Part shown: positions 58,844 through 61,639 of the stretch, one piece after another | Position numbering within the stretch: position 1 is the stretch's first letter | Layout: every line of letters starts with the position of its first letter | NCBI RefSeq assembly: GCF_000006765.1 | Contig: NC_002516.2 | DNA length: 64,000 nucleotides | Source of the DNA: Pseudomonas aeruginosa PAO1 | Lineage (GTDB): Bacteria; Pseudomonadota; Gammaproteobacteria; Pseudomonadales; Pseudomonadaceae | Strand: one strand, 5' to 3' | Notes under the pieces: model-generated | The model's input: only the letters and a program-made list of their open reading frames with translations | Database searches by the model: none | What the model was told of the DNA's origin: nothing | Program-made: the position numbers and the translations under genes

Positions 58844-59737
58844 ATGGAATTCCGTCAACTCCGCAGCTTCGTCGAAGTGGTCCGCCAGGGCAGCTTCACC
58901 CAGGCGGCTCAGGTCCGCCACGCCAGCCAGTCGACCATCAGCAAGCAGGTCGCCCAACTGGAGCAGAGCCTTGGCGTGCAGGTATTGGAACGCAACGGGC
59001 CGCACGTGCGCCTGACCGACGCCGGCGCCGTGGTGTTTCGCCGCGCCGAGGAGATGCTGCGGCTGCGCCGCGACCTGCTCAGCGAATTGGACGACCTCAG
59101 CCAGCTCAACCGCGGCGAACTGCGCCTGGGCCTGCCGTTGCTCGGTGCCGACGCGCTGTTCGCCCAACGCTTCGCCGAATACCGGCGGCGCTATCCGAAC
59201 ATCGCCGTGCACCTGGTGGAGGGCGGCAGCAAGACCATGGAGCAGGCGGTGCTGGCCGGCGAGCTGGAATTGGCCGGCAGCCTCACCCCGGCGGACGACG
59301 GCTTCGACTACCAGCCGTTCTGCAACGAACCGCTGGACGTGCTGCTGCCGGCCGGGCATCCCAAGGCCGCTGCCGCCAGCGTCGCCCTCGGCGAACTGGC
59401 GGACAGCCCGTTCCTGCTCTACCAGCAGAGCTTCACCCTCAACGACCGCCTGCTGCGCGCCTGCCTGGAGGCCGGCTTCAGCCCGCGCGAAGGCGGCCGC
59501 AGCGGCCAGGCCGACTTCCTCGGCGCGCTGGTGGCGGCCAACCAGGGAGTGGTGCTGCTACCACGGGTGATCGCTCGCGAGATCGAACGCCCGGGAGTGG
59601 TGCGGGTCCTGCTCAGGGAGCCGGACCTGCGCTGGGACATCGCCTTCATCTGGCGCCGTGGCGGCTACCTGTCGCGGGCGGCGCAGGCCTGGCTGGAGCT
59701 GCTGCGCGAGCAGCCGCTGGAGGAAAGCCCGGCGTAG
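58844..59737 (+). CDS. LysR-family regulator (CidR-like)
   Basis: 297 aa LysR HTH, divergent from cidA/lrgB pair. Confidence 0.9.
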   Translation: MEFRQLRSFVEVVRQGSFTQAAQVRHASQSTISKQVAQLEQSLGVQVLERNGPHVRLTDAGAVVFRRAEEMLRLRRDLLSELDDLSQLNRGELRLGLPLLGADALFAQRFAEYRRRYPNIAVHLVEGGSKTMEQAVLAGELELAGSLTPADDGFDYQPFCNEPLDVLLPAGHPKAAAASVALGELADSPFLLYQQSFTLNDRLLRACLEAGFSPREGGRSGQADFLGALVAANQGVVLLPRVIAREIERPGVVRVLLREPDLRWDIAFIWRRGGYLSRAAQAWLELLREQPLEESPA

Positions 59738-59998
59738 GACGAATAACCGCCAGCTCGGCAGAGGCTACGGCGGATAACGCCTGGGGGCGTTATTCGCCCT
59801 ACCGCTTGCTCCCTCCCCGTGTAGGGCGAATAACCGCTACGCGGTTATCCGCCACCTCGGCAGGCGTTTCGGCGGATAACGCCTGGGGCGTTATTCGCCC
59901 TACCGCTTGCTCCCTCCCCGTGTAGGGCGAATAACCGCTACGCGGTTATCCGCCACCTCGGCAGGCGTTTCGGCGGATAACGCCTGGGGCGTTATTCG
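59734..59998. repeat. REP-doublet array, left part
   Basis: Degenerate REP at 59734, units at 59769 (102 bp) and 59871 (101 bp), and the first 27 bp of unit 3 from 59972. Each unit holds two inverted GTAG-type REPs. Confidence 0.95.
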
Positions 59999-60001
59999 TA
60001 T

Positions 60002-60014
60002 ATGGACTCCTCCC
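60002..60014. repeat. IS subterminal inverted repeat (right end, 3 bp from end)
   Basis: ATGGACTCCTCCC, exact reverse complement of 61351-61363. Confidence 0.95.
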
Positions 60015-60049
60015 GGTTTGCCAGTGTTTGTCTTGATTTCAAACCTGTG

Positions 60050-60210
60050 TACGACTGCATCCGTATATCCGGCTTCATGGAGTGGTGTTGCAACTCCCGA
60101 GCCCTGATGAAATGCGCGCCTGCATACCTGATCGCCCTAACGGCTTTGCTTCACTGCAGCAGGGAGCCCACGTATAAACCAGGTTTCATGCAGGCCGGTT
60201 CGACCGGTTC
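60050..60210 (-). ncRNA. Putative bridge/seek RNA of the IS (target- and donor-binding loops)
   Basis: Manual folding gives two stem/internal-loop/hairpin modules whose loops match the REP target and the circle junction; transcript ends unknown. Confidence 0.8.
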
Positions 60211-60273
60211 GTCATCATTGTCATTCACTGAGCAATCGTGGTGGATGTTTCAACTACGGTGTGGCAGGAACGC

Positions 60274-61290
60274 TCAACCGGGCCGGTAGCATGTCTCCCG
60301 GCTGAGTAAAGCCCAAAGGATCCGGGCATTCTTGTTGGCCAGGGCAACGGCGACGACATTGGCAGGACGCCGTTGCAGCAGACCTTGCAGCCAGCGGCTG
60401 CGGGCATCGGTCTTGTTGGCGCAACAGCGCACGACTGCACGGGCGCCATGGATGAGCAAGGTCCGCAAGTAGGTATCGCCGCGCTTGCTGATGTTGCCCA
60501 AGCGCTGCTGCCCGCCCGTGGAGTGCTGCCGTGGCACCAGGCCCAGCCAGGCCGCAAACTGGCGGCCCGTGCGGAATTGCCGTGCATCACCGGCGGATGC
60601 CGCCACCGCGCTGGCGCTGATCGGGCCGATGCCTTCCACCGCCAGCAGGCGCTGGATGCGGGCATCGCCACGTACGTGAGCCTGAATCTGTCGCTCCAGT
60701 CGAGCGATGCGCGCCTCCAGCGTCTGCAATTCATCTTTCAATTCACGCAACAGCTCGCCCATCGGGGCCGGCAAGGGCGCCGGCTCGGTAGCCATGACCG
60801 TTTCGAGCAAGGCCATCGTCGCCGCTCGCCCACGTCGAGTCGCGATCAGCCCGAACTCACCCAGCAAGCCACGCACCTCATTGCACAACGCCGTGCGGGC
60901 CCGCACTAGACGACTGCGCACCCGATGCATCGACTGCACGGCCTGCTGCTCTGCGCTCTTCACCGGGACATAGCGCATGCTCGGACGACTGGCGGCTTCG
61001 CAGATCGCCTCGGCGTCGTGTGCATCGTGCTTGTCACCCTTGACGTAGGGTTTTACGAACTGCGGTGCGATCAGGCGTACCGTGTGGCCCAGCTCCCGCA
61101 ACTCGCGCGCCCAGTAGTGCGCACTGCCGCAGGCCTCCATCGCCACCAGGCACGGCGGCAGTTGGCGAAAGAAATCCCGCACCTGTGCCCGCTTGAGTTG
61201 GCGACGACATACCACATGCTCGTGACGATCAACGCCGTGCACCTGGAATACTTGTTTTGCCAGATCCAGACCAATGCGACTAAGGTTCAT
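60274..61290 (-). CDS. IS110-family DEDD transposase/recombinase
   Basis: ATG 61290 after GGGGGAG (338 aa); RuvC-like GLDLAK, MEACG, KHDAHDAEAI; HhH VEGIGPISA; GLVPRQHSTGG with conserved Ser; intact frame. Confidence 0.96.
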   Translation of the reverse strand: MNLSRIGLDLAKQVFQVHGVDRHEHVVCRRQLKRAQVRDFFRQLPPCLVAMEACGSAHYWARELRELGHTVRLIAPQFVKPYVKGDKHDAHDAEAICEAASRPSMRYVPVKSAEQQAVQSMHRVRSRLVRARTALCNEVRGLLGEFGLIATRRGRAATMALLETVMATEPAPLPAPMGELLRELKDELQTLEARIARLERQIQAHVRGDARIQRLLAVEGIGPISASAVAASAGDARQFRTGRQFAAWLGLVPRQHSTGGQQRLGNISKRGDTYLRTLLIHGARAVVRCCANKTDARSRWLQGLLQRRPANVVAVALANKNARILWALLSRETCYRPG

Positions 61291-61350
61291 GCTGACTCCC
61301 CCTCCGGGACTTGTGGCTGCACCATTAGTCTGGCGCTTGACGCCGTAGGA

Positions 61351-61363
61351 GGGAGGAGTCCAT
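61351..61363. repeat. IS subterminal inverted repeat (left end, 7 bp from end)
   Basis: GGGAGGAGTCCAT. Confidence 0.95.
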
Positions 61364-61370
61364 TTCATTG

Positions 61371-61639
61371 CCCTACCGCTTGCTCCCTCCCCGCGCAGGG
61401 CGAATAACCGCCACGCGGTTATCCGCCACCTCGGCAGGCGTTTCGGCGGATAACGCCTGGGGCGTTATTCGCCCTACCGCTTGTCCTCTCCCCGTGTAGG
61501 GCGAATAACCGCTACGCGGTTATCCGCCACCTCGGCAGGCGTTTCGGCGGATAACGCCTGGGGCGTTATTCGCCCTACCGCTTGTCCCCTCCCCGTGTAG
61601 GGCGAATAACCGCCACGCGGTTATCCGCCGCCTCGGCGG
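61371..61639. repeat. REP-doublet array, right part
   Basis: Remaining 74 bp of unit 3, unit 4 at 61445 (101 bp), unit 5 from 61546 (degenerate end). Confidence 0.95.

Follow-up and report, generated by a model that had tools for sequence, protein, structure and literature searches.

The downstream non-coding end of ISPa11, in the Pseudomonas aeruginosa PAO1 genome, carries the bridge RNA (seekRNA) of this element. Its two modules are each built around an inner stem-loop. We hold with high confidence that the bases of these inner stems matter as paired helices and not as sequence signals, and that both modules share a frame which would bring the core bases of target and donor into alignment. 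The RNA and its mechanism are already published and our finding is an independent rediscovery, so its main value lies in a correction. This concerns two hexamers, GGGCUC and AAGCCG, which the original prediction had read as conserved contact points of the transposase and as the trace of an internally duplicated loop. Our own basis consists of the structure of the RNA, the covariation between its guides and the DNA, their register and the invariant positions; that the RNA is made and bound by the transposase is taken from the literature.

ISPa11 lies within a REP unit, inserted at GTAGGG-C-GAATAAC (core base between hyphens; Table 1). When the two flanks of the element are joined they give an intact REP, identical to uninterrupted copies found tens of bases away. 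The ambiguous base common to both junctions is a plus-strand G at 59998 and 61370 (C in RNA sense), which bears out the predicted 1-bp C/G overlap at the two ends of the IS. The inverted repeats are inset, by 6 nt from the left end and by 3 nt from the right end. The transposase is 99% identical to proteins named 'IS110-like element ISPa11 family transposase' and has both the DEDD and the Tnp domain expected of an IS110-family element with a bridge RNA. The longest ORF on the minus strand (60274-61368, 364 aa) would start from an ATG that lies within the left end of ISPa11; because all homologues are about 338 aa long, we placed the start of the protein at the ATG at 61290. Downstream of the gene is a non-coding end of 275 nt (60273-59999), as the IS1111 subgroup requires.

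Two further observations concern the surroundings and the ends of the element. The REP arrays that flank it (59734-59935 and 61395-61610) hold ten copies of the 14-nt target on both strands, eight of them perfect, and give sub-threshold Rfam matches to the Pseudomonas sRNA P33 (33-35 bits, with a gathering score of 45). If the ends of ISPa11 were joined, 60023-60018 and 60000-59998 joined to 61369-61367 would form a candidate junction promoter, composed of a -35-like TGGCAA, a 17-nt spacer and a -10 TACAAT running across right end, core and left end. The -35-like hexamer of this putative promoter would be TTGCAA in most relatives, and a T core would give a perfect TATAAT.

Table 1. Features of ISPa11 and of its bridge RNA (positions in the 64-kb window)
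Feature	Position	Strand	Details
ISPa11, IS1111-group IS110-family element	59999-61370	minus	1372 bp, shared core base counted once
Subterminal inverted repeats, 13 bp	61363-61351 and 60014-60002		ATGGACTCCTCCC and GGGAGGAGTCCAT
Transposase, 338 aa	60274-61290	minus	DEDD (RuvC-like) PF01548 and Transposase_20 PF02371 (Pfam)
Bridge/seek RNA core	60051-60211	minus	small hairpin, target-binding module and donor-binding module
Upstream pentamer GAUGA	60212-60216	minus	pairs with UCAUC 60110-60106, within the right donor guide
Small 5' hairpin	60207-60195	minus	CCGGU-CGA-ACCGG, present in ISPa11
Module 1, target-binding loop	60119-60194	minus	outer stem covarying
Right target guide	60171-60178	minus	UUUAUACG, complementary to right flank C GAATAAC (core to +6)
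Module 1 inner stem-loop	60142-60168	minus	GGCU 60168-60165 with AGCC 60145-60142, 99% paired
Left target guide	60132-60141	minus	U-UAGGG-C-GA after invariant G 60141; core C 60134
Module 2, donor-binding region	60057-60118	minus	2-bp GC/GC closure, 60117-60116 with 60058-60057
Right donor guide	60107-60114	minus	CAUUUCAU, complementary to left-end +2 to +9, ATGAAATG
Module 2 inner stem-loop	60071-60103	minus	GGCU 60103-60100 with AGCC 60074-60071, 99.7% paired
Left donor guide	60061-60070	minus	G-AUAUA-C-GG after invariant G 60070; core C 60063
GGUUUG/CAAACC inverted repeat	60015-60020 and 60040-60045	minus	present in ISPa11

We compared ISPa11 with 80 related loci (L001-L080), which we retrieved from one-genome-per-species contigs with an alignment of 22 transposases. 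Their proteins share 53-80% identity and their 3' ends align well. A covariance model of the RNA (R1), built from 39 of the 80 loci, has a single match in the window, that is, in the whole 64-kb stretch of DNA analysed (60051-60211, 133.6 bits, E=1e-30). Motifs were counted over 78 RNAs, registers and invariant positions over 76 non-redundant relatives.

ISPa11-type RNAs have a conserved secondary structure with compensatory changes: 98.6% and 95.1% of the cells are paired in alignments A2 and A3, respectively, compared to 24-39% when the partners are slid; taken over all comparisons the figures are 95-99% and 24-46%, and the covariation score is 0.56-0.62 compared to 0.05-0.12. Rfam searched at permissive thresholds returned no family over the region of the RNA, and the single-sequence folding energies computed for the 275-nt end and for a 178-nt piece were not better than those of shuffles (z = -0.9 and -1.4). 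Single-sequence folds of the non-coding end are partly lineage-specific. The two hairpins that had been predicted on either side of the modules both occur in ISPa11 and are both poorly kept outside it. In relatives, the conserved part of the 5' hairpin amounts to its three inner pairs, which are invariant; the outer two are broken in 35-58%, and no covariation was detected. The arms of the 3' GGUUUG/CAAACC repeat are paired in 15-37% among 71 relatives, so this hairpin is present in ISPa11 and not conserved.

All that the original prediction stated about the sequence itself is correct. The pair GGGCUC...AAGCCG is present twice on the minus strand, with GGGCUC at 60169-60164 and 60104-60099 and AAGCCG at 60146-60141 and 60075-60070, and a search for GGGCTC-N10-30-AAGCCG gives only these two matches in the window, one per module. 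Some collinear pair of repeated hexamers is found in 42% of the dinucleotide shuffles of the 275-nt non-coding end, and one whose hexamers can also pair over at least 4 nt in 2.8%. Since such repeats are common in shuffles, the weight rests on the comparative data and not on the repeat. These data contradict the reading of GGGCUC and AAGCCG as conserved contacts of the transposase. ISPa11 is the only one of the 78 RNAs to have both hexamers twice, 57 have neither of them, and the exact GGGCTC/AAGCCG motifs are mostly absent from the 80 loci. In the nearest relatives, with 80% identical transposases, module 1 reads GGGCCC..AAGGCCG. Conservation of the scaffold motifs in homologs was the check that the original prediction had set for itself, and by this check the claim fails.

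The element that persists at these positions is a helix. Each inner stem-loop rests on a covarying helix of 4 bp, with GGCU as one strand and AGCC as the other. Its states in module 1 are GGCC (28), GUGC (19), GGCU (9), GCAC (6) and GAGC (4), and also as GGUC, GUAC and GCGC; in module 2 it occurs as GGCC (44), GGCU (18) and GGAC (11), and also as GGUG, GGUU and GGAU. The partner strand always compensates, in both modules. The same inner helix is found in the two modules of 20 out of 76 elements, compared to 18.4 expected if they were independent. The identity of the hexamers in ISPa11 is lineage-specific, recent and coincidental, and would have arisen from two independently drifting helices that happened to coincide among few allowed states.

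The guides of module 1 match the DNA on either side of the insertion point. The module is closed by an outer stem composed of CCUGCAU/AUGCAGG (60194-60188 with 60125-60119) and CCU/AGG (60183-60181 with 60129-60127), all 7+3 pairs of which covary, with up to six pair types per position. In the 3' arm, UAGGGCGA (60139-60132) is identical to the left flank and core of the occupied REP site, GGTAGGG-C-GA. When the relatives are considered, positions 2-7 of this guide agree with left flank and core at 5.79 of 6 positions (70 loci, 60 of them perfect), compared to 2.68 in permuted pairings (maximum 3.27 of 2000) and to at most 2.03 after a shift of one nucleotide; the 5' guide agrees with the right flank at 5.86 of 7 positions (permuted 3.06), and the phylogenetic links between the loci mean that these permutation values overstate their independence. 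The two arms of the target loop fit opposite strands around the core, far above permuted pairings. The 5' guide of ISPa11 itself has one mismatch with the right flank, at +2, and in the searchable text of Siddiquee 2024 (PMC11187229) the ISPa11 target, GTAGGGCGaATAACCGC, likewise shows a mismatch at +2, set in lower case. In four relatives (L010, L058, L016 and L063) the target 5' arm agrees with the right flank at only 2-5 of 8 positions although the 3' arm fits the left flank; the elements may have inserted off-target or at half-matched sites.

The register on this side varies. The offset of the target 5' guide is 3 in 27 loci, ISPa11 among them, 2 in 16 and 1 in 3, and in ISPa11 the nucleotide that faces the core precedes the inner stem by 3 nt in module 1 and by 2 nt in module 2. 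The difference of about 1 nt between the right guides, with which the original prediction had left off, is therefore real and reflects a 5' linker that varies in length in the target module; it is also lineage-specific.

Module 2 matches the two ends of the element in the same manner. Its GC/GC closure never varies and can be extended by 0-1 bp in 71 of 78 RNAs; we considered a longer closure and rejected it, since the pairs cannot be continued beyond 2-3 bp. In the 3' arm, AUAUAC (60068-60063) equals the right IS end and core, CCATATA-C. Positions 2-6 of the donor 3' guide equal the right end at 4.99 of 5 positions (69 loci), and the guide covaries with five classes of right end (ATATA, ATGTA, ATGCA, ATACA and ATCTA). 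The 5' guide has an offset of 2 in 66 out of 71 loci and agrees with the left end at 4.77 of 5 positions, again with covariation (TTTCAT/AATGAA, TTCCAT/AATGGA, CCCAT/AATGGG, TACCAT/AATGGT and TGTCAT/AATGAC). This second region thus has two arms that fit, and covary with, both ends of the element. Depending on the clade the core is C or T, and within an element the two 3' guides and, wherever it is known, the left junction agree in this base.

The core base of the right junction differs from that of the left in 10 loci. Eight have C (or an unknown base) on the left and T on the right (L001, L008, L013, L015, L023, L028, L029 and L049), two have T on the left and G on the right (L062 and L074), and all keep the left-junction base in both guide arms. 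This suggests insertion at sites with a mismatched core, or tolerance of wobble. In one locus (L047:2631-2776) the donor 3' arm is GAUGUACG though the right end still reads ...CCATATA; its close relative L053 has the matching arm GAUAUACG, and L047 may represent a copy whose donor guide is damaged. Positions after the core fit the non-cognate DNA, as do the handshake guides of IS621. In the target 3' arm (60132-60131) the A-U of G-A-U fit left-end +2 and +3 (97% and 95%) and not the target, and in the donor 3' arm the G at 60062 fits target +1 (92%) and not left-end +1 (2%). These positions resemble handshake guides but barely vary, and a handshake-like match between donor-guide +2/+3 and the target flank gave permutation P-values of 0.06 and 0.6, neither of them significant.

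The two modules share a frame that is far more constant than the hexamers. As predicted, right guide, stem-loop and left guide follow one another in this order in both modules. The A directly before the 3' strand of the inner helix is found in 75 of 76 target modules and 75 of 75 donor modules, and the G directly after it in 76 of 76 and 75 of 75; in ISPa11 they are the A at 60146 and 60075 and the G at 60141 and 60070. The G that opens the inner helix is conserved in 97% (target) and 100% (donor), and the G after the core in 92% and 98%. Both modules consequently read A-N4-G, six nucleotides, the core pyrimidine and G. The seventh nucleotide after AAGCCG is C in both modules of ISPa11 (60134 and 60063), and this left-guide register, with the core 7 nt after the stem, was rightly predicted: it is fixed in all 76 non-redundant relatives.

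It is plausible, by analogy with IS621, that the invariant A and G of ISPa11 are contacted by the protein. IS621 has a conserved flipped-out A together with a conserved syn G (A67/G72 for the target loop, A150/G155 for the donor loop), which its four protomers recognise in like manner, and its loops are described as 'pseudo-symmetric' (PMC11208158). The A and G of ISPa11 have the same spacing of 5 nt. Against the comparison stands that IS621 belongs to the other subgroup and has a reversed guide order. Neither the A-N4-G frame nor the variable 5' offset or the long-range helix described below is mentioned in the searchable text of the known papers on the ISPa11 RNA.

The modules differ most in how they are closed. 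On a longer alignment (A4), RNAalifold predicted a helix of 5 bp between the pentamer GAUGA, upstream of the modules, and UCAUC, with 99% of the cells paired and all 5 bp paired in 73 out of 75 loci. The outer pair of this helix occurs as G-C, G.U, A-U or C-G and the inner pair as G-C, A-U or U-A. The pentamer almost matches positions +1 to +5 of the left end; the C-G variant is found where the left end keeps its A, and the helix is therefore not mere mimicry of the DNA. It crosses the GC/GC closure of the donor module, so that the two modules are not topologically equivalent. Since no covarying outer stem closes the donor module, whose 5' guide has an upstream partner as well, a 'same scaffold' can be claimed for the 3' halves only.

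These observations lend themselves to a reading, quite possible if short of probable, in which the donor region, unlike module 1, would be no internal loop and would form instead part of a multi-branch junction closed by GAUGA/UCAUC. The helix would either mask the right donor guide until the donor DNA arrives or replace the outer stem. Besides the frequency of the helix and the A-U, C-G and U-A replacements, among which DNA mimicry leaves the C-G variant unexplained, the reading draws on the shortness of the GC/GC closure, merely 2-3 bp. It also draws on the searchable text of Durrant 2024 (PMC11208160), according to which many IS1111 RNAs have the nucleotides that bind the donor within a multi-loop; this is probably the same feature as the helix described here. 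On the other side, variation is limited to two of the five pairs of the helix, and the changes go back to few independent events. The same nucleotides (p7 and p8) covary with the left end, which makes the two pairings overlap, and in the minimum-energy fold of ISPa11 the partner of the pentamer is GUCGU in the 3' tail instead. This last pairing, judged by eye, does not seem to be kept in other clades, and RNAalifold did not select it. We consider it somewhat doubtful, though possible, that the donor side of the RNA in ISPa11-like IS1111 elements is self-masked or multi-branch and not a second copy of the target loop. If this were true, donor reprogramming would need a compensating change 100 nt upstream.

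Less favoured is the explanation that had been offered for the repeated hexamers, namely that one guide loop was duplicated internally to give the two modules and that GGGCUC and AAGCCG survive from this event as a conserved scaffold. We regard it as unlikely. The order of the parts and the A-N4-G-N6-core-G frame are indeed the same in both modules, the hexamers are identical in ISPa11, and the pseudo-symmetry of the loops of IS621 makes an ancient event, before the split between IS110 and IS1111, conceivable (PMC11208158). As evidence of duplication, the hexamers fail: their identity is confined to one RNA out of 78 and absent from the closest relatives, and the stems vary independently, with about as many identical pairs as chance predicts. 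The inner hairpins, of 17 and 23 nt, have nothing else in common; the target module has a 10-bp covarying outer stem as opposed to the 2-bp invariant closure and long-range helix of the donor module; and the 5' linkers differ. Similarity between modules that is conserved in relatives extends to about six constrained positions and not beyond functional need, and the topology of the modules is not equivalent. The frame could moreover be reached by convergence, as a homotetramer that binds two loops alike would impose it on both. Because the IS110 and the IS1111 subgroups are both two-looped, any duplication must be ancient and too old to account for identities of 6 nt. The searchable text of the papers on these RNAs contains no statement of an origin by duplication. 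Overall, an internal duplication of one loop is possible but unlikely.

It is scarcely credible that the hexamers are pure chance and module 2 a terminator or processing hairpin and not a guide module: although collinear repeats are frequent in shuffles and a short 96-nt RNA matching the target is sufficient for ISEc11 (Siddiquee 2024, PMC11187229), module 2 is kept in 77 of 80 loci, its 3' arm tracks five right-end sequences and the C/T core and its 5' arm at least five left-end variants, both in fixed register, and this covariation with the IS ends already contradicts such a view.

We therefore return to two guide modules with paired inner stems and a common frame, which agree with the published systems. 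The left and right target and donor guides of ISPa11 are predicted in Durrant 2024 (Extended Data Fig. 10c, PMC11208160), and ISPa11 RNAs of two lengths, 96 and 172 nt, were co-purified with its transposase (Siddiquee 2024, Nat Commun 15:5235, Fig. 3h, PMC11187229), as far as the searchable text of the two papers goes. The published RNA belongs to the same element, has the REP target GTAGGGCGaATAACCGC and lies downstream of the transposase gene, and its 172-nt form is close in size to the 161-nt model match that holds both modules; we see no substantive difference from the present locus. The need for the RNA in transposition was tested functionally with ISEc11 (PMC11187229). The seekRNAs of ISEc11 and ISKpn4, of the IS1111 group (Siddiquee et al. 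2024), likewise lie in the downstream non-coding end, carry the top-strand complement 5' of the bottom-strand match, occur in short and long forms and have a reprogrammable target specificity. Their targets differ from that of ISPa11. We rejected a paper on ISPpu9 as a parallel as it concerns the IS110 subgroup.

IS621, from the IS110 group (Hiraizumi et al. 2024, Nature 630:994), resembles ISPa11 in having two pseudo-symmetric loops, each with a pair of guides that read opposite strands to the left and right of a common core. Its linkers differ by 1 nt between the loops (U59 compared to A131-U132), which is a precedent for the shift of the right guide in ISPa11 (PMC11208158). Unlike ISPa11, IS621 has its RNA upstream of the transposase gene, with the guide order reversed, and its core is a CT dinucleotide instead of a single C or T. 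Peculiar to ISPa11 in this comparison are its long subterminal inverted repeats and its donor region, which pairs with a pentamer lying upstream and has no outer stem that covaries.

In the model that we propose, the bridge RNA would be transcribed together with the transposase gene, from the minus strand, and lies in the long 3' non-coding end in the fashion of IS1111. The 5' arm of module 1 would pair with the REP target on the top strand of its right flank, and the 3' arm, which has the same sequence as the left flank and core, would pair with the bottom strand. The 5' arm of module 2 would pair with the left end of the element, and the 3' arm matches the right end and core. The frame, formed by the G that opens the helix, A-N4-G, one nucleotide, five guide nucleotides, the core pyrimidine and G, sets the core of either loop 7 nt downstream of the A-N4-G. 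Identical transposase subunits may, by analogy, grip both loops alike, so that the frame aligns the target and donor cores for strand exchange.

The original prediction had also drawn from the hexamers a rule for reprogramming. Reprogramming itself has been demonstrated, for IS1111-type seekRNA and for IS621 (PMC11187229, PMC11208160), and in this respect the rule is not new. What changes is its content, as the repeated hexamers are not to be used as fixed 'scaffold' sequences in the design of guides. For the clade of ISPa11, the inner helix should stay paired and its sequence is free; the A that precedes its 3' strand and the G that follows it should be retained; and the left guide should be set so that the core is the seventh nucleotide after that G. 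The right-guide side needs a lineage-specific linker of 1-3 nt, and the long-range pairing of the donor 5' arm should be checked.
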